NCBI GenBank assembly: GCA_035084275.1
Contig: CM068744.1
Coordinates: forward strand, 53,568,001-53,632,000
Source: Hydrolagus colliei
Lineage: Eukaryota
DNA length: 64,000 nucleotides
Direction of reading: 5' to 3'
The notes under the pieces were generated by a model. That model was not told where the DNA came from. It was given only the letters and a program-made list of their open reading frames with translations, and did no database searches. Below are positions 6,296-64,000 of the stretch, piece after piece; position 1 is the stretch's first letter; every line of letters starts with the position of its first letter. The position numbers were made by a program, and so were the translations under genes.

Positions 6296-9200
6296 CCTTG
6301 CATTTGATATAGCACTTTTCACATCTTTTAGACATCTCAAAGCACTTCACAGAATATACTGTAAAGTGAATTGACGGTATATTTGGGGACGAAACGTGGC
6401 AGCCAATTTCACACAGCAGTGTCCCACAATTAGTTGTGGATTGAATGTCCAAATTATTGTTTTTTTTGAAGGTCTTATTATCACCGGAAAAGCGATCCAC
6501 CAATCGACTAACAACTGGGTTCCTACTTACTGCTAGATAAACAGAGGCGTGTGGAGTAAAGAAACTTGCCCAACATTTTGCCCTGCTGGGAATAGAACCC
6601 AGGTCACTTGCGAGGAACGTTCTCCAACCATTGAGCTACAGGACTCCACATATGGAGTGTCAATGCAAACTGTGTTCCCCGGAAGAACAATAAACCAGTC
6701 GTTACAAGTGAAATTGACAAAAACATGAAGGTCTGACCAACATTTTGGATAGAAAATAATGTGCAAAGATCTAAAAGTACTGTAGAGCACTCAAGAGTGC
6801 ATTACAGAACTAAAAATGAACATGAGGATTTTACAGCTCTGGAGCATAAACACTTATTTTGTGTTTTTATTATGTAAAATCTCTTCCAAATGTATAAATG
6901 TATAAATTATACTGTGATAGCCACTATACGAACCTCAGGCATTCACAAACAAATAGCTTAATTCATCGTACATAAGTAAAAATACACCTATTGCTGAGTG
7001 GTCACACAAAGTTTCCAGGCATTGTCTCATTTTAACACAAATTATGTTTCTATTCATTATACCTATTTACAACATTATGAACATAATAAATAATAAAACA
7101 AAAATACAATTTACATCCTTAACCCTGATTTTAGATACATTTGTGTATTGCCAGCAAACAATTTCAATCGCAGAGAAATGTGAGTTTTCATTTCTGTAAC
7201 ATTCATTTTCCTTGGTAATTTACTGCTGGTTCTGCAGCAAAATGCAAATAAAAATATACAGCATCTTTGGCTCTGGCAACAGGGATTTTATTCAGTCCAG
7301 TGTCTATCAAACTCATTCTATAAAGGAAGGGTTAGGAACTTATTTAGATTTTCGAATGACTTGTACACAGACGAGCACTATGACCACACCAAGCCCTCTA
7401 AAAGTAACAGTACACTACCCTTACGTATTTACTTGTGATACATTTCAGGTAACAGTTTGCTGAAATGCCTTGCGAGACTTAGTGCAATAAACCATCACTT
7501 AATTCACTTTTCACCGAACACGCTAAATAATTCTCCTGCAAATATAGTCACAACACTTTACAATATATCCTGTGAAGCACTTTGAGACATCCTCCAGGTA
7601 AGCACTATAGCAAATGCATTATTATTTTAACTCAACAAGACAACCATCACTCCTTATTTACCAAGTTTAATCTGACAAAAAATATTTAATACAGTCGAAG
7701 ACTCTTTCCTTCCCTTCTCCCATACCCAAAACGTAAATGCCCCAGTTTGGACGACTACTAGATTTATCTACTCTGCAATAAGAACACAATATGTGCTGAT
7801 ATTACATAACATCAAGCATCAACAATGGTTTAATTCTCAAACACATACCTTTTGTTTGGTGTACATAACAACTGTGACAGCATCTTTAGTCTGAAACCAT
7901 TCATACCTGGTAACATTGAAAAAAAATAGGGTTGCATTGGTAATATTTTGTTTCTTTCTCAACTCTGAACATAAAGCTGCATTTCCAAAATCAGATGATT
8001 CACAAGTACAAAGTTAGGCGATACTGAAGTGGAGGACTTTTCAGTAGAGGATTCATAGGTTAAATGAGAATGAAGTAAAAACACAAGCATGACGTAACCG
8101 TGAAAATAAGTTGTAGTATATTAAAAAAATGGTATAATCTGGGATGGTGAAGATAATGGCGAGAGGCAAGATTGCCCTACAAACCAATCTAATTGGTGAT
8201 TTGACAGTGCAACATATGGATGGCAACTTTTTTGGGGGGTGGGGGTTACCCGTCTTAATATAGCTTTTGCAGTCTAACAAAAAGAGTCATGAAGGGGAAG
8301 CTTTACCAGAAATGACCCTGGCTCGGCATGAATGAGGATACTTCCAAGTTGTAAATAAATATCGGAAAAGGTTGATTAAGTAATTGATCTACAAATATTA
8401 ATACTTCATCCCTAATGCTCACAGTGCAGGTCAAAGGACTACAAAAGTAGCACAAATATGGGAGCATTGGTAAATCAAGCAACAGATAAATATTGGGTTA
8501 AAAAGTTATTTCCTTGCGCCATGGGATGTCCTCAAGATATGAAAGGCTCTATACAAATGTAATTTTGTTGTGTATTGGAATGTGTTGTTTACCTCCGAAC
8601 TATATTTCTACTGAAGAAATCAAAGAGAGCTACAAAGATTTACAAAGATAAGGCAAATTTCTACGATAAACCTTGCTAACAATACCCTTCCTAGTTATTG
8701 GTCCGCAATACAACTAGAAGATACCCACTAGCTCAAAACCATAGAGAAAGCTGGACAGCTGAGACAGAACATTTAAATCTAATCCTTATTTCATTACGTA
8801 ATTAAGAACATGCGTAATTCTCTCTGTACAAATGGTTTGCACAGTGCCAATACATCTGTGCACAATTTATACACGTACATAGTGACAACACCTAATATCT
8901 TCTAAACTGCAAGATAGTGCCCAGTATTAAGCAGGCCAAAACCAAATGCTTACGTGTTACTGTATGGAATGCGATCACCACATTACCATACAGGAACAAC
9001 AAGAAATAAGTATTTAATAATATGAATTTTATTCTGCAAATATCCTGTCTTTATTATGGAGAAGATCAGAAGCCCAGAAATTGCTTCTGCAACATTAGAT
9101 TTTTAGAGCCACTGACAGCAGTATGCTCGCACAAACTGAGCCTCAATGAAAACAAATACAATACCTACCTCGGTGAAACATTTCTTAATGTTTTTTCAAA

Positions 9201-12200
9201 CCCACCATCAGGAACACTTGCACCTGTAAAAGACATTTAAATAGTATGACATAGTCTTGTAAGTGAAATAGACTTTGAAGAGAAGTAAATAAACACCCTA
9301 TTGTCACTTTCTCAAATAATAGTCCTCCAGAATTCAACTTGATTCTTAACCATGCGTTAAACCAATACCTTTTAAATGTAATATTTTATTGGCTTTTCAC
9401 GATGTCATAGCATGACATTATACCAATTCATAGCATAGTACCAATTCTAGAACTAGTCAGCAGCCACAGATAGCGGCATTCATAGGGCTGCGGCACTCAA
9501 AAGGATTAAGGCTGATAATAAAATATGTAGTGACAGCTGGGTTAGCTTCTTGAAGTTAATTTAGGGTTAAATCACATCCACTTTAAAAGAGTTTATTTTA
9601 TTATGACATACCGTTTAGTAATGTCCTCTTTGACATTTTGACACAAGACCGATCAGAAACTGGAAAGGACAAAAATAAAAGACCTAATTAACACAGCGAG
9701 ACAACAACAACAAAGTAACATTTATAGAGTGTTTTTCACATCGGGAGGCCATCCCAAGGTGCTGAACAGTTAGGTCGAGACCATGTGGATCAACAAATAG
9801 AAAAATGGAGCAGTTTCCTCTGTAAAATGACATCATGTATAGGTTCCAGGATCCTATTTCTGGCTTCTACAAAAGTACACATATACAACAATCCTTACAA
9901 TCCTTGCATTTGATATAGCGCCTTGTCGTGTCTTCGAGGCGTTTCAAAGTGCTTCACAGAATACACTGTGAAGTGAAACAGAAACAGAAGTTGCGGGGAA
10001 CATTCAGCAGGTCAGGCAGCATCTGGTGAAGGGTCATGGACCCGAAACGTTGACTCACTGTCCTTTCTTCGTAGATGCTGCCTGACCTGCTGAATGTTCC
10101 CAGCGACTGTTGTTTCTGTTTCAAATTTCCAGCAACTGCAGTATTTTGCGTTTTGACACTGTAAAGTGAATTGACTGTTTTGTGGATGAAACATGGCAGC
10201 CAATGGTGCACATCAATTGTCACAATGTCAAAATAATTGTCAATACAATAGCAATCTGGTTTCATTGTGCAAACAATGATTAATACAGTATCAGTAAATT
10301 TAAAGATAATATAAATGCAGATTAAGTAAAGGTACTGCTTGCAACCAAAATTAGAGTCACAACAGGCACCAAGAATTCCATAATGGAACAGAGACTGCAT
10401 CATAGCCAGCAATGCTAAACACTACCTCAATAAATTAATAAATTAAATTAAGCAAGAACAAGCGGATTACAATGTCATAACTGTGTACGGATCACCACCT
10501 CGTGAACAGAAAGATGATCATCAAATCATCAAAAGGACCAAGACATGGATAGCACACAAAATCCTGTAGTTCTCCAATGGGAAGAAAAGTAAACAAATTG
10601 TTGATAGCCTGAGAAAATCAACTAGTATCTACATAAGCATACAGGAAAGGAAACAAGACTGATTTACAGTTATTTCTCCAGGCATGCGTTATGCAAAAAT
10701 GGATTGCACACTGCCAGTATTGCTAGGTTGGTTCCTGGGATGAAGGGATCTGACCAATGAGAAGGCCTATATTCTCTAGAATATCGAAGAATTAGAGGTG
10801 ATTTTATAGAAATCTATAAGATTCTTAAGGGGCTTGACAGAGTAGACAGTGGAGACTGTTTCCCTCGGTAGGAGAATCTATAACAATGGGTCAGTGTTAA
10901 GATTAAGGGTCAGCCTTTTCGAACAAAGTTGAAGAAACTCTTCTTCGCTCAGAGGGTAGTGAATTTATGGAACTCTCTACCCCAAAAGGCCGTAGATGCT
11001 CAGTCTTTGAACATATTCAAGACTGAGATTGATAGATTTCTAATGGATAGAGGGATTAAGGGATATGGTGATAAAGCGAGCAGATGGAGTTAGATTAGAA
11101 GATTAGCCATGATTTTATCGAATGGCGGGGCCGGCTCGAGGGGTCAAATGGCCTACTCCTGCTCCTAATTCCTAAATTCCTATGTATTCAAATTAAATGG
11201 TAAATAAACATTTAAAATTATTCTTTGTGTAAACCGTCTCAAAACAGACGTTTGATGAAAATGTTTTCCAAATCTTCACGGAAAGGCAAAACACAAGAGT
11301 ATAATTATGGAATGTATCATGCTATATAGCCACATCTACCCACCCACCCAACCACCTTCACATCGAGAGGACGTCCCAAGGCACTATACAGTCAGGGAGG
11401 GACAAGGGCAGAAGGGGAGGGGTTCGGGCAGGGGGAAGGAGAACAGGAAAATTGACTGTATATTTGTGGGTGAAATGCAGCAGCCAAATTGCGCGCAGCA
11501 GTGTCCCACAAACAGCCATGGAAATGGGGCCGGGGAGAAAGGGGGAAAAGAGGGTAAGGGAGGAGAGGGAGTGAAAAATGATGTGGGGTAAAGTCAGGGA
11601 GGAAGAGGGGGGAGAAAAGGGGGTAAGGGAGAGAAAGGTGGGTCGGGGGCAAGTTCAGGGAGAAAGGGGGGTAAGGGGGAAGAGGGGGGGAAGGGGGAAA
11701 GGGGGGAGAGAAAGGGGGGAAAGGGAGTGAGGAAAGAAGAAGGGAGGAGGCCAGGAGGGGGGGGGGGGGGGGGAATCAAACAACAACAATCAACAAACAA
11801 AAAAAAAACAATAGTTCAGTAACCGCTCCTTGTCCTCGCCGCCCGCCTGGACCATCTTTAAAATGGCGGGAAACACCACACCAGGGCCCAATGTGGTGAC
11901 AGGCTCCAAAACAGACCGGCTCCTCAGGTGACGACTTGGTGACGGCCCTGGTACCTCGGACACGGCGTGTCTGGCCAGCTCGCCCGGCAGCAGCAGCCTC
12001 ACCGCCGTCTGGATCTCCTGCGACGAGATGATGGGAAAAGGCCTCGCCGGGGAACCACTTGAAGATGTCGTTGTCGAGCGAGTTCACGACGACGAAATGC
12101 CCATGTTTGGACTGTAACACTGTCTTTCCTTATGTCCAATTCACTTTGACGTGAGGTAGTACATTAGCCACAATGCAGAGGATGCGTCACAGATTCCAGC

Positions 12201-15200
12201 AGAACCTGTTTCTGTGAAGGCAGCAGTCCTTGATATCTCCACAGGGATCCTCAGATTCTGAGGACTTGGTGATGTTCTTGACAATGATGGTCTGGGTAGG
12301 GACATGGGTCACCTGGCAGGTGTAAAGCGCATCCCTCCTCCAATCTCTGACTGGGACAGTCAGCTGGCTGCTGGTGCTAAATTGTCTTCTCTAGCTGAGG
12401 GAGAGGTCACAACACCTGAGGCTACGATCTGGGAGCCCTTCAGCCAGTCAACCCTGAGTTTGCCTGGACGGAAAGCAGATATTAAGCAGACAGCAGTGGC
12501 CTGTTTGTTCAGGGTGATGTGTTCAGGGGACGTCTGTGTGAGGATCACAACTGGGGGCATTGGGGTCTGCAAAACATGATCTGAGACAGGAGCCGACGTC
12601 ACCGCGTCTGCCGCCCCCAGCGACTGGGGAAAGATGAAAACACACAAATGGGGCAACCTATATAACACAGTCACCTGGCTAGGAATATCTCTGACCCCAA
12701 CTAAGACATAAACATGAAAAATGGCTGACTTTCAGGTCTTCAGATTGCTGCTGACATTTCTTGTGTGTTTCAAGCATGTACAGCGTACAAGCGACATCTA
12801 AACAAAGCCTTGCTCATCCAGCTAGGCAGACAGGCAGGCATCATCACAGTTCTGTCCTGTTTATGAATAAAACAGATATTATCTATCTTACTCTGCCATG
12901 ACTAAGTGGCAGAATAATAAAATGACAATCAAACCAAATGTAAACCCTCCCCAATGGCCCAATACTTACCAAAAGGTCATTGCTTTGATTTTTGACTCTG
13001 CTGAGATGCTTTACGTCAGCTAAGGCTGCAATTTGTCTCAACAACTCTGGTTTTGGGGGGGAGGGGGAAAAAAAGGAGGTTGGAGCATTCACCCTCCTGG
13101 TCACCACCTACAGATGCTGACTTGAAATTGTATGCATGCACTTGGAACAAAGTCAATATTAGGATCGGTTGTAAGGCAGCACTAAGCTATAGTGTAAAGG
13201 TCTGATCTAGCATTCACACAATGGTGATCTTGGAACTGACATAGCCCAAAGGGAAAATATTTTGGTATGTGGAATAAATTCTTTAATTTATATCAGATCA
13301 TAACTTTCTATTTTGAGTGTATATTTTGGAAAAACTGAACTTGACAAATCAGTTGATAACAGTGATAGTAAAGTATTTGGCAAATATACATCACAAGATG
13401 GTTACAGACAAAGACGATTCTTGGGTCATATTACCACAATACCCAACAGTTTTAGGGTATTTGTTAAATGACTAGTATTTTAGCTTCCACCATCCTTTTC
13501 TGTGATTTACCTTTTTTCCTGAAAACTATCCTTCACTGATGTAGAATTGCCTACTGTGCATATTAGAAGCATTTGAAAAAAATGAAAAACATTACTGCTA
13601 CTATTCCATTATTCTGAAGATCAAATGGATATACGGATATACATACAGTATATGGATGTACATTTGTTCAAGATAAATTCAAACATTTTCATTCTTATTT
13701 TTAAAAGAGAAAAGGAATTGAACAGTTATATAACAATAAATAGCTATTAATTCCTCTACTGCATTCATTCTCCACACTCCCTCCAGCAACTCATTTTCCA
13801 CAGTTCTGCTGGAAGGATGTTTCCATTTCTTAAGCAAACATCTAATATGGATTTACCTTTCATAGAGGCAAGCTTCAAGACCATCCGTCCTATTAGGCAC
13901 TCCTTTAACATGGAATCATAGTTGACCCAACGATGAATCTGAAATGTGAGGGCAATGAATGTCAAATCAACTGGTCCATTCAGATTGATAGATATTTGTA
14001 CCCATGATTTTTTTAAGTATCTTCGCTGGATACATTTTACAATATCAATCAGTTTATTTACAATGCAATTTTCCATTAAACATCAGGAAACTACTTCATC
14101 CTAGAGTAGTCCATATAGCACATTTCACAAGATTTGGCCAGCCTCTTACCCAAGTTCTTGACATAGTTAATGTAATTAACTTTGAAACCCACTTTATTTT
14201 GTTCGGATTCAAATTGAAAATTCAGAAGCATCGTTATTCATATACAGGTATCCCCCAAATTACAACACTTCTATTTACATTGTTTCGATTCAACGGACAT
14301 AATTTTTTAACACCTTTTTAATCGATATACGACATTTGGTTTTGTTTTAACAACCCAAAAATTTGGCGCATCTTTTTTGCGCATGCACAGTACATAGTGT
14401 ATTTTGCGGTAAAATTGCAGTCGTATACTGTATCCAAGCGTTTGAACTGGCCAATAGCATGTCGCTACGTCAGTGGTTCTCAACTTTTTTTGCTGCGACC
14501 CTAATTTGCCTCGCATCATTAGAGGGCGTTATCGCGATTGACGTTCAGATTGTGGACTCAGCTATAAAAAAGTACGCTCTTTATACAAATTGGTCGGCAG
14601 TGTCGCTTTTTTTTTAGTGGTAAAACCTTTTTTTTTAGCGGCTAAAGCTTTTTTCTAGCGTTTTAAAAGTGAGCTTCTTTTGAAGTGATACCACGCAATT
14701 TCAAGTGATTTGCAGCCTCCACTGCATTTCTACAATGTCAGAAAAGAGACCGGTAAATGAAATGGGCAGCAGTAATACCGCTAGCAGTAAAAAAAACGCA
14801 AAGTCATTACTTTAGATACTAAATCTTGCCTATTTGTGTTATTTTGTGTGTTTTTTTTTAGTGTTTTTTAAGGTCCGAAAATTGTGAAAAGAACGCATCT
14901 TGGGTTATATAATGGGACCGCATGGGAAACCGCGTTTCGATTTACGACGTTTCTATTTGAGTACCATTTTTTAGGAACGCAGCCCTGTCGTAAATCGGGG
15001 TATCCCTGTACAGTACTTTTTTTCTTAAAGGTAAAAGTAAATACTTCAATAAAGAATAAGGGTATTTTAGATAACAAAAACAATCAGAAATAATTTATTT
15101 AAACTCCACAACCATTTTCTGACTTCTTAATAATCCAATGTGATAAATCTTGCTCAAGATAAATCATTTTTAGGAATGCAATATAAGATGAGAAGCAACT

Positions 15201-18200
15201 AATTGCTCCATTTGTCTTCATCCAAAGTTTTCTGTCAGGCCAGGTCTTCACAAAAAAAATCTAGCTGCAATCTTGCTCCATCATCAAACTGTCATCTCAT
15301 TCACTGATTATTCAGGAAGTTGGTTAATTCCTTTTGAAATGCAAGGCAGAGGATTTTGCAATCTTTGTACATGGTGGACTGTAATTTCAGTTACCATTTT
15401 CAAAAATATCTTTTTATCAGTACATCCAATTTGCACCAACCTACTAGCACGCCTTATTTAATCTGTCTACTCATTACTGTTATATACACTTTAGGACATG
15501 TATCAAAGATGGATAGATGAAAAAAGTTTAGCTAATCAAAACTTTTGTAAATTCACTTCTTTAGTTCTAACTAAATCTCATAACAGAGATGTGAAAACCT
15601 ATTTATGACTGAACTGAATCATTGTAGTTCAGTGGCTCCCTCCTGTGCCAGTCGCATTTCACGACAAGGTTATGCTGTGGATGTAATTATATGCAGACAA
15701 GAACCTTGGAGAAGGAGAAGCTAGCATCGTCAGAACCATTCAGTTAATGGAGACATTTCGCACTCACCTCCAAAAGAATTCCATTTTTGTATGGCATTTA
15801 CTTCAACCATGAAATAAAAACGTTCAGGGGGATTCAAAGCAAAAATCTCTGATTTCAAGTCCTGTGCTCAACCAATTCGGCTACTGTTCAGTCAAATTCA
15901 GAGAGAGAGAAAAAAAGTTTATTCAAATTATGTGCCACTTAAGTTTACCTGATCAAACAACTCTGTTCCATCAATTCCAGCTCCTTTCATGAGTTCTTCC
16001 TCTCCTCCAGGGTGATATTCCAAATAAGGAGTCAGATTGTAAACCATACCTTAAAAGACAAACAGCGCAAACCATTAGGAAGATTACATAAAATGGAGAG
16101 CTTCATCAGGACATCCAACACTAGGACAGTTTCTAATGCAACAATTGAAAGATACAGTAAAAGCCCGTTTATCCGGCACACTCGGGGGGGGGGGGGGGGG
16201 GGGGTCAACTAATTGACTGTGCCAGATAATCGAGCGGCAAGTTGCTGAAAACCCAACACAAAAAAATTATTTATTTTAAAACATACTATATTAATAATAT
16301 ACTAAATAGTAACAGAATATTGTATAGCTACTTACCAATAAAAATGTCAGCACACTCGGTAAAAAAGCATTTTTTACCGATCAATAAAAACCTCCAAGTT
16401 CGTAAGTTTAATAAGTGCGCATGCGCGCATTGAGTATACTCGGGATTGCTGGAATGGGGAATTGCCCCAGGAGGGGTTCGAGAAATCCGGTTAATTGGGT
16501 CACGGATAAACAGGCTTTTACTGTAGTTTGATATTGTGTTCTGGTCAATCCCAATGTAACTTTATAAAATTCAGTTTTTAGGAGACACAAGGGAATAAAA
16601 TTCAGATAGTAATTACTCTCTCAATATTACCTGTTAAGCAATTCTTTAGAATCAACTATAATTCACATTTATAACATATTACATTTCAGAACATCACACA
16701 TGCCCCCTTGTGTCCACAACAGAGAGTGCAGATACAGATTAGCAAATCATGCATAATTAGAGCACTCAATTTAAATTTCTGGTTAATTTCTCAAGGTACC
16801 TGTAAAAGCGTTGACTCAATCCCAAAAAAAACTTAATATAAGGATTTGTGAAGAGCAACTGGAAAGTACAGCTGATCTGAAGGGATCTTTTTCGTTAAAT
16901 GAACACCTGAAGTCAGTGTAATAATAATATAATAACCTGCAGATAATCCAAAACTCTGAGGTCCATGTCCTGTATCGCACCAAGCTTCGCGACCACCATC
17001 TCCCCCATTCTCGCCTGACTCAATTGGCTCCCCATCACCCAGAGGATCCAATTCAAGATCCTGGTCCTCACAATCAAAGCCCTGCATGGCCTTGGTCCAC
17101 CCCACCTCTGCGATCTCCTAATCCCCTACCAACCTGCCTGCCGGCCATTTGCTCAGCAGGCTCCAGCCAGCTCCATGTCCCCCGACCCACCCGTCCCACT
17201 ATTGGCAGATGAGCCGTCAGCAACTCTGCTCCTAACCTCTGGAACTCCATCCCGCACTTTCTCCACCGCGCCCCTTCCCTGGCCCCCCTTCAAGTCCTGC
17301 CTCAATGTCCTCCTCTTCAACAGTCCCATTGGTCACCCCAAATCCCCCCTTTCCCTCCACCCTCCCCATACCAAACTCCAGCTCGGTTCTGAAACAGCGC
17401 CTTGGGATGTCCTTCTGACGTGAATGGCGCTATACAAGTGTAATTTTGTTGTTATATAATAATCTTTTCATCTGATAAAGCACTTTTCACATCTTATCGA
17501 CGTCTCAAAGCACTTCACAGAATATACTGTAAAGTGAATTGACTGTATATTTGTAGGCAAAACTCGGCAGCCAATTGTGCACAGCAATGTCCCACAAACA
17601 GTCCTGGATTGAAAATGACCAATTTTTATTATTGTGTTTTTTTGGGGACGGATTATTATTAAGCGTATGGCATAAGGAAACTTGCCCAATGTTTCACCCT
17701 GATCTGCCTGGATTCGAACACAGGTGAGTGCTCTCATCACTGAGCTCCAGGAACTCCACAAACCAAAACATCCAAACCAACACATCCAGACAAAGCAATA
17801 AGTCAGGAAACTTAACCCACGATACTCAAGGAATCAAAAAAAACTATCTCACCTCGGATACATATCCAGCAGTCATCTTTCTTATTGTGTTTAGCAAGTT
17901 CTTCCTCTGAAACCTCAATAAGTCTTCCCTTAAGCCCAGTCAGGTCCTTGCCGCTCTTTGTCAGCCGGATCCAGTCCATTAAACTTCTGCCAGGTTTCAA
18001 TCGCACCTTTACGTAGTGAAAAGAAATACTGATGAAGCAATCTTGAAACAGTGATTTCACATAAAAACTTGATAGGTATTTATCAGATTCAACGGAATAG
18101 GTCAAATGTTTGCGCACACAATTAGTTTCAGTAACGTATCCTGGGTTAAAATTGCTTGTAATGAGCCTCAGTTTCCAAAGAAAATTGCTGAAATGATGTT

Positions 18201-21200
18201 CCAAGCAAGTTTAAGATCACTCACTCTGCATCATATATACAAACATTGGCTGAGATGCTTTTACTCATTTCATTTTTTCTTTTACCAGCCAAGTCAGCAT
18301 TGATCCAACTCGGATAGAAAATACCTGTGTAGATGTCAGGTGATCATTAAGTATGCAGATATCATTCCACATATCACTCAGGAAGTTTCAGGTAAATAGT
18401 ACAACACATATTCGCTTTAAGACAGTAAACACAGAATGCTATTTGTTAATACAGTAAAAGCCTGTTTATCTGGCACCCAATCAACCGTAAGTTCTGTATA
18501 ACCAGCATTGCAAAATTAACAGTCTGCATTCGATTAACCGGAATTTTGAAATTTTTTGGGGGGGCCGTTTTCGGCCAAATATGCGGCACGCGCTTTAACT
18601 GGCATTGGCCAGATCCCGATGGTGATGGATAAGGATAAACAGGCTTTTACTGTACCTGTATATTTTTTAAAAGAATATGTATATTTGTATATTTAAAAGA
18701 AAAAAACATGTGTTGTTTTGTGGGGCAATGGCAACAATGATTAATGCCTTTATATAATAATAATAATCCTTGGATTTGATATAGCGCTTTTTCACATCTT
18801 ATCGACGTCTCAAAGAGCTTCACAGAATATACTGTAAAGGAAATTGACTGTATATTTGTGGGTGAAACACAGTAGCCAATTGTGCACAGCAGTGTCCCAC
18901 AAACAGTCGTGAATTTTATTATTATTGTGGTTTATTATTTGGCATGTGGAGTATGGAAATTTGCCCAAGGTTTCGCCCTGATCTGCCTGGATTCAAACAC
19001 AGGTCTCACACTTGTAAGGCGAGTGCTCTAACCACTGAGCTACAGGAGCTCCACAATATGATCACATTAGGCATTGTATTGCACCAAGAAAGTTTTCAGC
19101 CTCGGGAGTACGTTCTAAAGTGCTTCACAGAATTTACTACGATAGCGTAGTGACTATATTTTGTAGTTAATAGTAAATACAAATGTGAAAATAAAAAGAA
19201 AATAATCTGCTTTTCCCTTTCCTCCTCCCCCCACACACAGATAACAGAAATTACCTTACACCTTCATCTTAATGACACAAACAGGGGTGGACTGGCTTGT
19301 TCTGTTTATGAATAAAGCTTTATTTTACTTTAATTTCTCTAATGCTAACAACACTGTAGTAAGTGACTGAGCTCAGTCTAGAGACAGAGCACCAGTGAGA
19401 AGTAGATTCTCAATGTCATGCCTGCAGGTTAAACACACCTTAGTCCACTTTACAATATTTACTGGAGAAAGAGAGCGTCTCTTTATCATTCATGAGGATT
19501 TATCATCATAAATACTTAATCAAATAATCGCAAGTATTTACTATTGGCACATGCCATATCAGACTAACGCATATATCTGGAGATACTATTTAAGCCTCAA
19601 GTTTTTTTAATATCTAGTATTAATTCTAATTCCTCCTACCAAGTCAATGAGATTAGGTATCATGAGTTGTATTTTGCAAGTACAGTACATATTTTGAATC
19701 AAAGAGCCTCTAAACCAAATTATGAGTTAAAAGTTGCTTCTTCGTGCACTCCTGTATGTGATGCCAGCCCAAAGTTTGAGCCTCTGCCATCTGCACTCAG
19801 CAATTTTTAAACAGGATAGGTTACCCCTTTTCTACAATGTATAGTGGCACACACAATAACTATTTATAATTTATGCCTCAATCAACATTTAAAGGTGAAT
19901 TCAACAAATATTACGATCATTTAATTTTACAACGCCGACACATGACATCTGGCCACCAAATATGCGCCAAGGCGTTTTTATAACATGAATCACCTAATCC
20001 ATTTTTTCTCCAACCCACTTCACAGGATCATTTAATATTCCTCCTTTACAAACAACAATCTTGTTCCATTTAAAGAATTTTAAACCACAACAAAATTACA
20101 TTTATAGCGTGCCTTTCATGTCGGGAGGACGTCTCAAGGCATTGAACTTGGGACGTCCTCCCGACGTGAAAGGCGCTCTATAAATGTAATTTGTTGTTGT
20201 TGTTGTTGAACAGTTAGGTCGGGATCCGAGTAAGGGAGAGGGGCAAGGCAGGGGCGGGAGAGTTAGGAGAGTAGGGAGAGAGTTGGGAGGGCAGCAGAAG
20301 GCATAGTTGAAGAGGAGGGTCTTAAGACCAGCTGAAAGCCTGTCTGCCGATGGTAGGGCAGGGGACATGGAACAGGCTGAACGGAGTGTGCGGGAGGGTT
20401 CATAGGGGGACAGTGAGTTGGAGGTGGGGTGAGGGGTCAAGGCCGTGAATGGCCCTGAAGGTGAGGATGAGGATCCGAACACTGTATTAACAGGAGAATT
20501 TCTACCTAATAATTCTGTGTTACACTTAACTAGAATGATTGGACCTCTAACTTCTGCATCGTAAAATAGCACACAGTCATGGATTAATTGACCAAATTGA
20601 CAAATAAGCTATTGCACTATAACACAATTGTTACAAATAAATCAAAAAATATTTTAATCAGGATGACAAATCCACCCCAACAAAAATAAACTGTGCCCAG
20701 AATCATATGGCGTTCTGATTATTTTCTAAATGAGTAAATACAAATAGCTAAAGGTGCAATATTTAATTTTTATATACAGGTAAATATTCTGTTTTTTGAA
20801 TAGAATTATTGTATTTCATATGAAGATGTTTACTGTTCAGGTTTTATTTGAAATGTTTCCAGGCAACCCAATCACAACACAAGCTGCACATTACTGAACT
20901 AGAGATGGTGGCAACCGAAATACAGTAATAATAATAATATCAAAATACCAGTAAATACTAAAATACAAATTTTTATTTAAAAATAAATAAAAATGAACCG
21001 GATGGTTGCTTAACCAGTGTTTTCACACTTGACCATGCCACACCCAGGCACATCAAGTCTTAAGTCATATGGAGTGATACCGTCAGGTTACCCTTTTCAG
21101 CTCAGCGTCAAGTCATACCTAACACTAGTTATGTGAAGGGTGCTACCATAAATTCAAGTTATTATTGCTGTTGCATTCTTCTCATTCTTAAAAACAAGCA

Positions 21201-33120: not shown

Positions 33121-33227
33121 TGACTTTCAAAAGTTGAATGTCAACAATACCATGATTGCCAGCAACCCTGACCTGAAAAGCACCATACAAATGTAATTGT
33201 TGTTGTTGATACAATCTACACCAAGAT

Positions 33228-33570
33228 AATAATAATAATAATAATCCTTGCATTTGATATAGCGCTTTCCACATCTTATCAACGTCCCAAAGCGCTTTAC
33301 AGAATATACTGTAAAGTGAATTGACTGTATATATTTGTGGGCGAATCACAGCAGCCAATTGCGCACAGCAGTGTCCCACACACAGTCGTGGATTGAAATG
33401 ACCAATTTTATTATTGTGTTTTTTTTGGAGGGATTATTATTAGGCATGTGGAGTAAGGAAACTTGCCCAAGGTTTCGCCCTGACCTGCCTGGATTTGAAC
33501 ACAGGTCTCCCCAGCTTGGTTTCCCCAGCTTGCAAGACAAGTGCTCTAACCACTGAGCCACAGGAGCTCC
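33228..33570 (-). mobile_element. tRNA-derived SINE, full length, duplicated-head subfamily
   Basis: As above; AAGCTGGGGA duplicated in the head. Confidence 0.9.
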
Positions 33571-50640: not shown

Positions 50641-50976
50641 GGAGCTCCTGTGACTTAGTGGTTAGAGCACTTGTCTTGCAAGCTGGGGAGACCAAGCTGG
50701 GGAGGCCTGTGTTCAAATCCAGGCAGGTCAGGGTGAAACCTTGGGCAAGTTTCCTTACTCCACATGCTTAATAATAATCTGTCCAAAAAAACCACAATAA
50801 TAAAAAGAATTGGTCATTTCAATCCACGACTGTTTGTGGGACATTGCTGTGCTCAATTGGCTGCCGCGATTCACCCACAAATATACAGTCAATTCACTTT
50901 ACAGTATATCCTGTGAAGCACTTTGGGACGTTGATAAGATATGAATAGCGCTATATCAAATGCAAGGATTATTATA
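50641..50976 (+). mobile_element. tRNA-derived SINE, full length, duplicated-head subfamily
   Basis: Shares the head duplication with 33228-33570; a further 3' half follows near 51205-51400. Confidence 0.9.
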
Positions 50977-53900
50977 TTATGTCTATGCTGATACTCCAAT
51001 GCAGAATTGGGGGAATCTTGCATTGTTTGAGATGCCATCTTTCAGATGAGACATTAAGATGAGCTCCCTTCTGCTTGTTCAGATGGACATTAAATGGCAC
51101 AATTTGAAAAGAAAAGGAATAAGAATCCTCCAGAGAGAAAAAAAAATTATCATTCACTTCATGGATATTGCTGTGCCACATTGACTGTCACTTTTGCCTA
51201 GAATAATAATCCCTCAAGAAAAAAAATAGTTTACTTCAATCCACAACTGTTTGTGGGGCACTGTTGTGCGCAATTGGCTGCTACATTTTGCTCACAAATA
51301 TACAGTCAATTCACTTTATAGTATATTCTTTGAAGTGCTTTGAGACTTCTTGGAGATGTGGAAAGTGCTATATCAAATGCAAAGATTATTATTATTATAA
51401 ATACCCTTTACGTCCACCTGACGTGAAAGGCGCTATACAAGTGTAATTTTGTTGTTGTTGTTTACAGAAACCTCAGCAAAGAGCTTTGAGAGATTTTGCT
51501 TTGATCAGTCAAGAGCAAGGATTATCAACATGGCAAATCTTTTTCAATGCAACAGTTACACTTATACTTGGAAGAATGCAGACAATGAAATCTCCATGCT
51601 TTATGTTCTTTGGAGTGAGTAAAGCTGCTATATAAAAGAATAAATAGGTCAAGCCAGAGAACATGAGAGAACATGAATAAAGCACACATCAGATATAGTG
51701 CATTTTAAATAGAATCTCTAAGTGTTGCATTAAAATAAGTGCTTCACTATATTCCAACCAGCTGCAAGTATTATAACATTAGCTGGTGGCAAAACACTCT
51801 TCACGTGTTATTAAACTGAAAATATCTGCATTATTTTAAATGCCTTGATTGTTTCTATACTTCTGGCATACATATAAAAAATTATAATATCCCTTTATAT
51901 ATTCCATCTGATTAGATCTGTTAAAGTATCAGCCATATTATAGAGTCGTGATTGATAGCCTGCACAGCTCCCTATTTCCATGGTTACTGTAGGTTGAAAT
52001 GTTCATCTTCTGCTACGCGATCACATTTCTCTGTGAAATAACAACAGAGGTGAAGCCTTTGACCTATCACCCTTCCGAGGAGTGCACGCTCAATCAGCAG
52101 GCCTGAACAAATTTCAAGTGATATTCTTTTCAGATGAGACTGGAAGCAAAGGTACTGAGGTTAGCTTGCTTTTCCTGCTCCAACGTCATTGCAATGTCTC
52201 TGATAAAGATGAGCAGGTGGGGAACAGGATTTTAAAAAAAATCACTTTTCCTTTCTTGCAGTTAAGTACAATAACAGTTCTTTTTGCTAACCTCTATGCT
52301 ATCGACATATTGCTTATTCGGAATTAATGGCAATGTGGCATGCATGAATTAATAAATATTCACTTCACATGTTTTTTTCTCCACTATTGAATAGTATTCT
52401 TTAAACTGACATTCAGAAACCTTGTGGATTGCAGAAATAGTCATGTAATTACAACATTTACATTGATATACAGAAGCAGTGAATTAATTTGGAAATTGCA
52501 GGAGTCTCCAGTTTAGTGATCAGGCTCTCATCTACTCTCTCAACTCAAAACTGTATTATCATTTGTGAAGAGAAACTCTTGATGTTGGAAAAACTTACTT
52601 TTTAAAAACAAATCTCTTTCCTATTATCATTATCGTTTGCTTTCTCCATCTCAATCCCAATCTCATTGCCTAGAGACATTACTTCTAAAAAGTTTCTTTG
52701 GATCTTCTGTTAAAGTACAAATGTCTCAGGAATGGCCCAGTACTTATATAATGGCCCAGTACTTATACTTAAATATTATTAAAGGTGCATTGTTAACACC
52801 CCAGGGAAAATATTGTCTGATGTCTCTATTTCCGGGGACATTACCCGGCGTGAAAAGGCTATATAAATGCAAGTTGTTTCTGTTACTTTGCTTGAGCACT
52901 TTGAGACATTCTCCCGACATCAAAGGCACAGTATATACACATATATCTATATCTATATATATATAAATTGTAAATTGAATTATATTTGAAATAACACTGA
53001 TTACCAACTCAAGTATGTTGAAAAACAATATAGGTTGACTTTCTCTCCCCTAAATCTTTACTTATTGTGATTTTACATTTACCTTTGCACAATGTGTATC
53101 ACTAATCATATTAATATTTAAATATTTAAAGTTCAAAATCTGCCTCCTAAATAATATATACTGATTAAAATCCTGATGTTGAATTTTAATATTTATCTTT
53201 GTATCTGGGATTAGTGGCCATGTTTAAATTTAGGAGTATTTGATTTATTTTCGAGTGATGAACAGTATTAAAATATATAACCACAAAACACTGTAAAACT
53301 GTGCGGTTATTTCTTTTACGATACATAAATATAAAATGATTTCAGCTTCTTTTTGTGATTTGCTACAACAGCCTTTTAAATTGCTTTCCTTCTGTATCAT
53401 CAGCACACATTGATCAAAAGCGTTCGCAATTTGTTTTCTGTGATGTCTGAGCCTGCGGAAAAGATGAGGGATTTGTACATAATTTGTGTTGATTGCATTT
53501 CAGAACATAATCAACAGTCATGCACCACATATTTCAAAACTAATAAACAGGAGATGAGTAGGAGAGAGACAAAAAACACAGTCACTAACAGTTAGCACAT
53601 GACGTATGTGAATGATTCAGATGAACACTGCAACCCATGTTATGTTGGAATAATAACTGATTGAAACAGTCTACTGTGCCTCATGCTTTAATTAACCCAA
53701 GGTCCCTTAATTCAATACAGGAATATACTAGAACATTCGTTCTGATCATTAGGAGTTCAAGTTCAGTTTTATCGTACCTATCGAGCTTCAGAAGCATTAG
53801 TGCTTGTTCCCGAAAAAGACCTCTAACCGAGCACCAATGCCCACCCTCCAGGTTATTGGCACTGCTGCTATCAGACAATATCTTTGGTCACACAATATAG

Positions 53901-61915: not shown

Positions 61916-63510
61916 GTAAGTGTCCTGATCTGATTACAGAGCAGACACCAGATTATTTAATTACATGGGATCACGGTTGATATACTGTACCTTGTTTTAT
62001 TATTATTGCAAATAGCAATGAAAATTAGATTTTTTGTTCCTTTTGTTTCTAAATCTGTTCATTTCCAAGCTTTGAAAAGATAAATGGGCCATGAGGAGAA
62101 ATTACACTGATACAGTTAATTACATCACCTTTCTCCATGTAGTTGATTCTGTTTTAAGACACCAGTTAAGTATGCACTGATTTTGTCATAATGTCAGTTT
62201 TTTTTAACTACAATTGTACTGAGGTACAGTATAATAATAATAGCCAAGAATGCTTTCAAATCAAACTAAAATACGCAGGAAGAAACAATCAAACACTCCT
62301 GCCCCTGACCACTGTCTGCTGAAAATGAACGTTGATTGAGGGCAGTATCTTTTTATTCAAATAACATATTCATAATAATAATAGTCTTTGCATTTGTTAT
62401 AGCACCTTATCACAAGGTGATATAACAATAAGTGAAAAAAGATGACAAGATGATCTAGTGCTACATCAAATGCAAGGAATAATATTACAGTATTTGTAAT
62501 ACTCAGGGCTACAGTAGTGACGAATATTGAAAGCACACATGCAATATGCACACCTATACACACATACAAGAATAAATACGGATACATATATATTACCCCA
62601 TATACAGACTCACACATATACACACATTTTAGCACAGAAACACACATACACATAGAGCTAAACACATTTGGGGATAAATGCAGACACACAAATGCAGACA
62701 CACATGGATGTGATATACTGGAAAAGGTGAAAATATTTCACATGTATACTGAACTTTGAAAAAAAATCATTATGTGAATGCCTAAGTATAAATTGTTCTT
62801 AATTTATAACACATTTCCACAATTGATGCTTTTCACAATGGGAAGCCATTTGTGTTTGCTTAGCAAGGTTCCCTGCATTCTGCTTTAAACCTCAGGGTGT
62901 TTTATCATTAAGAAAAGGCAGAACCAATTTTTTGCTTGTTGAAAAGTGTTTCCTTTATAATTCCTTAAATTGAGGAGATTATTATCCAATTTATTTTTGA
63001 AAATGTTCCACACAACACAATTAGTCACGCAGAATACTATCCACTTAAAACAATGACAGAGAGTTACATTTATTATTCTTTTGATGATTAATGTTCACTG
63101 ATTCTAAAAGGTGTTTGCAGACTTTCCATATTAATCTCACTCATTAGTGCATTCAAGCCCCGCTTTACCTCTGGCAGTTTGTATTTTAAGAGGAGGGAGG
63201 AGGGAAGTTATAGTAGGGACAGGGAAGTACAATGCCAACTGTAGTTATTGTGAAATACTGTATAAGAATTCAAGGCTTAAAGTTTCATCTGTAAAATCAT
63301 TTAGTGTTAAAATGTAATATTTAGCAGGATTGTGTAAAATTCTTAAATTCAATCCGAATTTAGAAGCAGTTTTTCTGCAGTTCTTAAAAAAAAGATGGGT
63401 CTGCAGAGGTAAAGCTTTGGATTAATATTACCAGTGCCACCAGTGGAGACTTTCAATGAGCTGAAGGCGTTTGTGAAGGTAAGATGAACACAATAGGATG
63501 ATGATTTGTA

Positions 63511-63810
63511 GAGTCCAGTAGCTCAGTGGTTAGAGCACTCGCCTTGCAAGCGAGAGACCTGGGTTTGATTCCCGGCAGGCAAAACCTTGGCCAAGTTTCC
63601 TTACTCCACATAATAATAATAATAATCATCCCTGAAAAAAACAATAATAAATTGGTCAATTCAATCCACGACTGTTTGTGGGACATTGCTGTGCGCAATT
63701 TGCTGCCGCGTTTCACCCACAAATATGGTCAATTCACTTTACAGTATATTCTGTGAAGTGCTTTGAGATATCTAGAAGATGTGAAAAGCGGTATACCAAA
63801 TGCAAGGAAC
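63511..63810 (+). mobile_element. tRNA-derived SINE, full length
   Basis: Head TAGCTCAGTGGTTAGAGCACTCGCCTTGCAAGCGAGAGACCTGGGTTTGATTCC (TGC anticodon-like loop); extra tail near 63850-63905. Confidence 0.92.
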
Positions 63811-64000
63811 ACTATTTTTCTGATGTTCAAACATACTTTCAAACATACGTAGACGTATAGAAGATGTGAAAAATGCTATACCAAATGCAAGGAGTATTAT
63901 TATTACTCATATCCTCCATGTAATGGGGCCTGTACAAGGGAACATTTTATGACCATGCCTGCTTTCTTTCACATTGATAACTTGTTGGTGTCAAGTCTTG

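Follow-up and report, generated by a model that had tools for sequence, protein, structure and literature searches.

How an immunoglobulin (Ig) heavy-chain fragment and part of a histone H2B sequence came to lie end to end within an intron of CYB5R4 is the question raised by this locus of Hydrolagus colliei, which we analysed within a 64-kb stretch of contig CM068744.1 (the window). A first, sequence-only reading had described an Ig heavy-chain constant fragment (12590->12112) followed by the 3' half of an H2B sequence (12111->11925) on the minus strand. Both identities were borne out by Pfam, PDB, tblastn and frameshift-aware alignments, and the coordinates were correct to within ~10 nt, with the Ig homology beginning near 12599. 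The Ig C1-set region runs from 12599 to 12106 on the minus strand and comprises the linker between two domains, the whole of IgM CH2 and about 40 codons from the beginning of CH3:

12540..12599 (minus strand), linker between Ig domains with the beginning of CH2, 20 aa; Ig homology is detectable no further 5' than this
12259..12539 (minus strand), IgM CH2 domain (C1-set), identified by PF07654, PDB and alignment to Callorhinchus milii IgM models
12227..12258 (minus strand), spliced CH2-CH3 junction, 11 aa, from comparison with C. milii models
12106..12226 (minus strand), first ~40 codons of IgM CH3, as pieces of 14 aa and 25 aa aligned to 'IYFLPPAQRQVLMDSSVTLTCVVVNAPLHVNVTWTQGNTHLQSG' of model P0152

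Two uninterrupted pieces matched the C1-set family PF07654 in Pfam, at 12363-12641 (minus strand; E 2e-7, 31.7 bits) and 12190-12390 (minus strand; E 5e-5, 23.9 bits), both exceeding the gathering cut-off of 21 bits, and the best PDB matches of the Ig half were Ig heavy-chain constant regions (mu, epsilon and alpha, E 1e-10 to 1e-12). The C. milii IgM models were reached by exhaustive protein search. Frameshift-aware alignment to one of these, P0152, which has the architecture CH2-CH3-CH4-secretory-tail, covered 12563->12100 with 94 of 151 codons identical, and the Ig half was collinear with the CH2-CH3 part of this model in IgM order and spacing. The CH2 domain showed 61–69% identity with the C. 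milii IgM CH2 models, while identity among the C. milii paralogues was 74–81%. The linker matched 'SDKVLHKPSSPVVIL' of P0001 and 'VLHKPSPPVVML' of P0017, and resembles the one ahead of CH2 in P0001, a CH2-to-CH2 spliced form. The constant fragment of the first reading can be narrowed on these alignments to the IgM (mu) class, CH2 plus part of CH3, with an IgM gene closest to that of C. milii as its apparent parent. Upstream of ~12600 there was no Ig homology above shuffled controls, and V and CH1 are absent from the IgM piece. Two strings in 12600-13000 (VGVRD..VLY and one of 12 aa), considered as CH1, V or another CH2-like domain upstream, were rejected since they scored within the range of shuffles. 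The remainder of CH3 and CH4 were found neither downstream of the Ig piece nor elsewhere in the window, and the tail, too, is lacking downstream.

The interval between KNITKSS and the start of CH3 is only 33 nt, a spacing like that of an mRNA. The spliced models P0152 and P0021 have 10–12 aa at the CH2-CH3 junction, whereas P0077 and P0025, in which the intron has apparently been read through, carry 69–113 aa (207–339 nt) of non-Ig sequence there. Because the gap is 33 nt as against 207–339 nt in the apparent read-through models, the Ig half derives from spliced RNA or its cDNA, the CH2-CH3 intron of the parent having been removed. The string ttttgcag at ~12570 was examined as a splice acceptor, which would have indicated a genomic origin of CH2, and was rejected, as it encodes VLQ, for which C. 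milii CH2 has the homologous VLHK.

The H2B half and its 3' side consist of:

11929..12113 (minus strand), histone H2B residues ~57-123, identified by tblastn, PDB and shuffle test; 5'-truncated at the Ig junction
11895..11928 (minus strand), putative H2B stop codon and 3' UTR in remnant form, read by eye

A 25-aa piece at 12029-11955, from the C-terminal histone-fold sequence, showed 88% identity to H2B (tblastn E 3e-10), PDB H2B chains were matched with E 1.5e-7, and the frameshift-aware score was 115, compared with 24.5 +/- 3.8 for shuffles (z ~24). The match is extended in a different frame by an 11-aa piece at 12084-12040; overall, this half is ~76% identical at the protein level, with at least three frameshifts and about 9 codons missing. 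Further 3', 'ggtctgttttggagcc' (11895..11928) resembles the histone stem-loop consensus by eye, agreeing at 13 of its 16 positions if two indels are allowed. The Rfam Histone3 stem-loop (RF00032) gave no match at a relaxed threshold of E <= 10 over 10500-14000 and 11850-11960, and neither the candidate 16-mer nor the 11895..11928 stretch folds better than shuffles; the stem-loop may simply have decayed. H2B genes are generally intronless, so this half is uninformative on intron loss, and since its 3' end with the stem-loop is not demonstrable, its RNA origin is assumed. The RNA or cDNA source proposed in the first reading therefore stands for the Ig half and remains an assumption for the H2B half.

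The two halves meet at a single short stretch:

12098..12116 (minus strand), Ig/H2B junction CAG TCC AAA C ATG GGC ATT, from the sequence as read and the overlapping alignments

The join is direct, as had been proposed: the Ig alignment continues through ...TVLQS(K) and that of H2B starts from S-K-(A)-M-G-I, so that the two overlap at 12116-12098 without a spacer. The overlap amounts to 3–4 nt (TCC), and either parent would have been able to supply TCC, judging from the protein alignments; this dependence of the microhomology on protein alignments was counted against template switching. Decay is evident on both sides of the junction. CH2 (12259..12539) has one frameshift and about 3 codons missing near 12382, the CH3 part (12106..12226) has two frameshifts and one in-frame stop, and the fusion as a whole has at least six frameshifts (at least three per half), one in-frame stop and missing codons, with ~11% divergence at non-synonymous sites and 24–39% amino-acid divergence across the two halves. 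To judge from its sequence, the fusion is dead and without sign of function. A single old event fits, because both halves have several frameshifts and comparable divergence, and at an assumed neutral rate of about 1e-9 per site per year the insertion would be on the order of 10^8 years old. Heavy decay of this kind, with frameshifts, a stop and 24–39% amino-acid divergence in the two halves, is unlike contaminating cDNA, normal intron sequence surrounds the segment and the window contains no N, all of which makes an artefact of the assembly or of the library, for instance through a chimeric read or stray cDNA, very improbable indeed.

The N-terminal half of H2B was searched for upstream of the Ig part and downstream of the H2B part and was not found. 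A nested insertion was rejected as a model, as the truncation of H2B coincides with the junction and the N-terminal half of H2B lies on neither side. Two independent neighbouring insertions, of an IgM retrocopy and an H2B copy, followed by deletion between short homologies would also yield a spacer-free microhomology junction, and both parts do have further internal deletions, but this course needs two rare insertions at the same spot and in the same orientation, and neither an H2B 5' half nor the remaining IgM CH3/CH4 occurs anywhere in the window; we consider it improbable. Template switching in one event is supported because H2B is truncated exactly at the junction and the parts are co-oriented and directly joined.

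The surrounding gene was delimited by three exons:

13858..13941 (minus strand), CYB5R4 exon, 28 aa (tblastn, 71% identity, E 2e-9)
12970..13046 (minus strand), likely CYB5R4 coding exon, ~25 aa, from splice signals and phase; its donor lies ~370 nt upstream of the Ig homology
7849..7906 (minus strand), next clear CYB5R4 exon downstream, 19 aa (tblastn E 0.003; splice sites read)

The host gene is CYB5R4, the exons of which lie on the minus strand (tblastn), and the chimera sits in an intron in sense orientation, in agreement with the first reading; the assignment of this intron as intron 4, however, did not hold. The stretch 13046-12970 has a polypyrimidine tract and cag acceptor, a donor reading TTG/gtaagt and a phase compatible with that of the exon whose end is at 13858, and shows a weak match to human CYB5R4 residues 153-165. 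Because this likely exon sits between exon 13941-13858 and the chimera, the latter is likely to lie in intron 5 or later. A phase mismatch implies one more small exon, which is missing from this set. The exon is probably unannotated, and for annotation it should be borne in mind that the Ig-like and histone-like matches in this CYB5R4 intron are no genes.

Downstream of the H2B half, the following features adjoin:

11813..11894 (minus strand), ~80-nt segment X, insert or flank
11774..11812 (minus strand), T-rich (TTG/ATT)n-like microsatellite, from TRF and sequence
11523..11773 (minus strand), C17 run and, after it, ~230 nt of polypyrimidine (the plus strand being polypurine), from TRF and repeat families
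11295..11522 (minus strand), tRNA-derived SINE (3' half), oriented like the chimera, from alignment to seven other copies

Segment X has no second copy in the 64-kb window and no Rfam match, and its fold is not significant. The polypyrimidine tract (11523..11773) shows a GC skew of 0.5–0.74. The SINE (11295..11522) is 5'-truncated, its core is ~10% diverged from the family consensus, of which at least 16 core copies occur in the window, and its divergence is similar to that of the chimera. A 5'-truncated SINE of similar divergence downstream and in the same orientation was counted in favour of template switching, and its distance of ~330 nt from the chimera (occupied by X, the microsatellite, the C17 run and the polypyrimidine tract) was counted against it.

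In this old copy, no direct repeat of >=10 nt brackets any of three candidate boundary sets; the only long match, C-rich and at 13055, was rejected as a target-site duplication (TSD), being the polypyrimidine tract of the upstream exon. No poly(A) tract was found 3' of H2B, where X (~80 nt) and then the T-rich microsatellite follow, and no LINE 3' end is recognisable at the chimera. The lack of TSD, poly(A) and a recognisable LINE 3' end was likewise counted against template switching. The first reading had taken the absence of poly(A) and TSD as favouring break repair, and while neither was found here, the inference fails: replication-dependent H2B mRNA carries no poly(A) tail, and because the copy is ~11% diverged at non-synonymous sites with many indels, a TSD of 10–15 bp would no longer be recognisable, so that the absent hallmarks do not favour break repair.

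A break-repair patchwork, in which separate cDNA- or RNA-templated fragments of IgM and H2B were ligated by end joining at a double-strand break, is nevertheless a tentative, less likely alternative, and the adjacent polypurine/polypyrimidine tract could have promoted such a break via triplex DNA. Both pieces are truncated (the IgM piece at both ends), neither TSD nor poly(A) was found, the junction overlap is a few nt at most, and a 250-nt purine/pyrimidine tract and the filler-like ~80-nt segment adjoin the insert. Against this, with ~11% divergence and a histone mRNA as source, a missing TSD or poly(A) is hardly informative, two independent cDNAs would be needed at one break, and such a model does not demand that the two pieces, and the SINE with them, share one orientation; from this sequence alone it is indistinguishable from template switching.

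Repeat searches and the removed intron also bear on the suggestion that the fusion is multi-copy cargo of a gene-capturing transposon (a Helitron-like or Pack-TIR element), which we judge quite improbable. Mosaics of gene fragments are typical of such elements (PMC8277862), and the boundaries of the insert are undefined, but no relevant terminal inverted or long direct repeats were found around the locus (9000-16000), no second copy of the Ig, H2B or X segment exists in the 64-kb window, compared with at least 16 of the SINE core, and capture of genomic DNA would have kept an intron between CH2 and CH3, whereas none is present. An exact look-up in public assemblies of the two largest ORFs here gave no match on record.

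Among these explanations, we give about an even chance to the fusion being an ancient, non-functional retro-pseudogene that arose by one insertion of a template-switched hybrid cDNA. Reverse transcriptase would have started at the 3' end of an H2B mRNA and, ~200 nt on, at H2B codon ~57-59, would have left this template; the nascent cDNA would have re-annealed via the 3–4 nt overlap (TCC) within CH3 of a spliced IgM heavy-chain mRNA, with synthesis proceeding 5'-wards through CH2 and ending near its start. The hybrid cDNA would then have entered the CYB5R4 intron in sense orientation, ~370 nt downstream of the exon, and the integrated copy would have drifted neutrally. Integration could have occurred by target-primed reverse transcription through a non-L1 LINE, possibly begun on the downstream SINE or X, and could equally have occurred by end-joining of a free cDNA. 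The LINEs of cartilaginous fishes are assumed to be mainly of non-L1 types. A wider version, in which IgM, H2B, X and the 5'-truncated SINE form one retrocopy begun on SINE RNA by the reverse transcriptase of a non-L1 (stringent-type) LINE with at least two jumps, seems unlikely to us. If true, cartilaginous fishes would have a first template-switch chimera of the multi-partite kind, a molecular fossil from which spliced IgM and non-polyadenylated histone mRNA would be seen to have been accessible to retrotransposon reverse transcriptase in the early holocephalan germline. Such accessibility would fit the germline-rearranged Ig clusters of these fishes (PMC5192425).

The direct consequence of the fusion is small, the element being dead and intronic; it is nonetheless a clean case, from beyond the mammals and fungi, of one retrocopy joining cellular RNAs that are unrelated, namely a B-cell transcript and a histone mRNA of the kind that normally lacks poly(A). 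Once its age and boundaries are established, it could reveal which reverse transcriptases gave rise to the processed pseudogenes of cartilaginous fishes and would add indirect evidence for germline Ig transcription. Human IGHEP2 is a processed epsilon constant-region pseudogene. Like such processed Ig pseudogenes, the present copy is a constant region without introns away from Ig loci, and Ig RNA would therefore have been present in germline or early embryonic cells; unlike IGHEP2, it is of IgM class, holds CH2 and part of CH3 only, is fused to a histone and is chondrichthyan. With templated sequence insertions and cDNA capture by end joining at double-strand breaks it shares truncated RNA-derived fragments and a short microhomology where they meet; neither a TSD nor poly(A) was found here, as in those cases.

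Template-switch chimeric retrogenes, both bipartite and tripartite, are LINE-mediated and have been described in mammals and Magnaporthe, with direct joining, the same transcriptional orientation, a 5'-truncated 3' part, a full-length 5' RNA and flanking short direct repeats as their hallmarks (PMC2104539). The Ig-H2B fusion resembles these in that two unrelated cellular RNAs are directly joined and co-oriented and the 3' partner is 5'-truncated (H2B from residue ~57-59), and, as in the tripartite forms, a co-oriented SINE lies further 3'. It differs in its host, a cartilaginous fish, in that direct repeats at its flanks, a LINE 3' end and poly(A) were not detectable, and in its 5' partner, an internal fragment of IgM mRNA rather than a full-length small RNA, a point counted against template switching since classical L1 chimeras use full-length RNA (PMC2104539). 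Holocephalan IgM clusters include a Hydrolagus type in which CH1 has been lost and CH2 duplicated (PMC3149040); compared with these, the present copy is a dead retrocopy in which an upstream CH2-like domain is not above chance. Set beside these systems, the Ig-H2B fusion is real, but as a chimeric retro-pseudogene it is ordinary, one decayed example of a class already known.

Three-frame translation of the minus strand between 11500 and 12900 revealed an immunoglobulin (Ig) constant-type region followed immediately by histone H2B sequence, and the element is a real, well-delimited and dead IgM–H2B chimeric retro-pseudogene, of a known class. Both uninterrupted Ig pieces passed the Pfam C1-set gathering score (12363-12641, E 2e-7; 12190-12390, E 5e-5), with heavy-chain constant regions (mu, epsilon, alpha) as their best solved-structure matches. 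Within the H2B part (residues ~57-123; 12113-11929, minus strand), a 25-residue piece (12029-11955) matched H2B chains of solved structures (E 1.5e-7) and was 88% identical to a human H2B probe; a frameshift-tolerant alignment to H2B scored 115, against 24.5 ± 3.8 for shuffled DNA. The gathering and alignment scores bear out the chimera proposed by the sequence-only reading, the coordinates of which were accurate to ~10 nt.

When 1.84 billion representative proteins were searched exhaustively, Callorhinchus milii Ig models (species assigned via cluster look-up) emerged as the closest single-domain relatives; two of these models, P0152 and P0021, contain CH2, CH3, CH4 and the IgM secretory tail. 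P0152 was collinear with the window from 12563 to 12100, with 94 of 151 codons identical in a frameshift-tolerant alignment spanning the complete CH2 and the first ~40 CH3 codons, and this alignment exposed three frameshifts and one in-frame stop. CH2 identity was 61–69% between the window and the C. milii paralogues, compared with 74–81% among the paralogues themselves. Ig homology starts at ~12599, within the linker preceding CH2; no CH1, V domain or second CH2-like domain was demonstrable upstream, where the best alignments fell within shuffle range.

The CH2 end (KNITKSS) and CH3 start (LLPSQKQ) are separated by 33 nt in the window, and by 10–12 residues in spliced C. milii models. In two further models, P0077 and P0025, the CH2 end and CH3 start are held apart by 69–113 residues (207–339 nt) of non-Ig sequence; judged from their sequences, these models appear to read through a genomic intron. 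Set against these 207–339 nt, the 33 nt indicate that the CH2–CH3 intron is missing from the window copy. This points to a spliced mRNA as the template of the Ig half, for which reverse transcription is required.

The H2B half has at least three frameshifts and has lost ~9 codons, with ~76% identity across the remaining codons; since H2B hardly varies, this amounts to ~0.11 changes per non-synonymous site and suggests a long period of neutral evolution, which would be some 10^8 years at a rate of about 1e-9 per site per year. The heavy decay in both halves counts against contamination, and an assembly artefact is very unlikely. The N-terminal half of H2B was absent both upstream of the Ig part and downstream of the H2B part, an absence that speaks against insertion of an IgM copy into an older H2B pseudogene. 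A 16-mer past the H2B stop region looks similar to the histone stem-loop, with no Rfam detection and folding no better than shuffles; an RNA origin of the H2B half is therefore an assumption.

At the junction (CAG TCC AAA C ATG GGC ATT) the IgM alignment reaches ..TVLQS(K), where P0152 has ..THLQSG, and the H2B alignment begins S-K-(A)-M-G-I, leaving no spacer; either parent could supply TCC, a putative microhomology. We favour, at about even confidence, a single hybrid cDNA, which would have formed when reverse transcriptase switched template from H2B RNA to IgM RNA. The main rival, two separate cDNA fragments end-joined at a break beside the adjoining purine/pyrimidine tract, is possible, if rather doubtful, and on the window sequence is inseparable from template switching. 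A deletion between two independent insertions would also bring the halves together and is unlikely.

GC content is elevated from ~11300 to 12800. On the minus strand, the H2B part is followed by, in order:

11813-11894, minus strand, segment of ~80 nt
T-rich (TTG/ATT)n tract
C17 run
polypyrimidine tract of ~230 nt
tRNA-derived SINE (3' half), oriented like the chimera

The 250-nt polypurine/polypyrimidine tract adjoining the chimera (11523-11773, with the G17/C17 run) may be fragile and capable of triplex formation; CT-rich blocks (11380-11430) break up the neighbouring SINE copy. The SINE (~330-nt consensus, (ATT)n tail) is also read through in apparent introns of the C. milii Ig models P0017 and P0152. 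The 64-kb window contains at least 16 copies of its core, and the copy beside the chimera is ~10% diverged; examples of the SINE are:

18750-19060, minus strand
33150-33560, minus strand
50650-51060, plus strand
63500-63900, plus strand

Other repeats nearby are an inverted repeat (9974-10024 / 10073-10123; 51 nt, 92% complementary, 48-nt loop) with the appearance of a MITE-like or hairpin-forming repeat, and an interspersed repeat at 10750-11180 on the minus strand, starting 'ggagcaggagtaggccatttgacccctcgagcc...', which is probably common in cartilaginous-fish genomes.

The Ig, H2B and ~80-nt segments were found nowhere else in the 64-kb window, and no target-site duplication (TSD) or terminal inverted repeat was found around the chimera; carriage as transposon cargo is quite unlikely. 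The earlier argument for break repair, drawn from the lack of a poly(A) tail and a TSD, is weak, because histone mRNA lacks poly(A) and a TSD would be unrecognisable at such divergence.

The chimera sits within CYB5R4, a minus-strand gene, whose exons were located using a human CYB5R4 probe except where stated:

22237-22157, minus strand, exon
18009-17851, minus strand, exon, 92% identity
16050-15943, minus strand, exon
13941-13858, minus strand, exon
13046-12970, minus strand, likely coding exon from splice signals and reading phase
7905-7849 (also given as 7906-7849), minus strand, YEWFQT exon
2708-2580, minus strand, exon
1667-1524, minus strand, exon

The segment at 13046-12970, uncounted in the sequence-only reading, has a polypyrimidine tract with a 'cag' acceptor at one end and a 'TTG|gtaagt' donor at the other, its phase is compatible with the preceding exon, and it is likely a further coding exon. 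The chimera, ~370 nt downstream, therefore lies not in intron 4 but in intron 5 or a later one. The phase 0 end of this exon does not match the phase 2 start of the next clear one (7905-7849), and a further small exon with a length of 2 mod 3 is therefore probable between 12970 and 7905. Read-through past the donor (12925-12969, minus strand) bears a weak likeness (E 3.6) to human CYB5R4 AKEGPSYPSYDWFQTD, which may be chance or a relic of an older exon arrangement, the true YEWFQT exon being at 7905.

The IgM genes of cartilaginous fishes form many scattered clusters, some germline-rearranged, and B cells are produced in the gonad-associated epigonal organ (PMC5192425). One known holocephalan IgM type lacks CH1 and has a duplicated CH2 (PMC3149040); the protein fragment P0001 (UniParc UPI0003D961EB), which joins a CH2 end straight to a CH2 start, is consistent with this form, and the window's pre-CH2 linker resembles it, which amounts to a hint at most. 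Published criteria for template-switch chimeras include a direct join, same orientation and a 5'-truncated 3' partner (PMC2104539). Unlike those chimeras, the one in the window has a 5' partner that is not full-length. Flanking direct repeats, a criterion there, were not found around it. With the published chimeras it shares the direct, same-orientation join and the 5'-truncated 3' partner.
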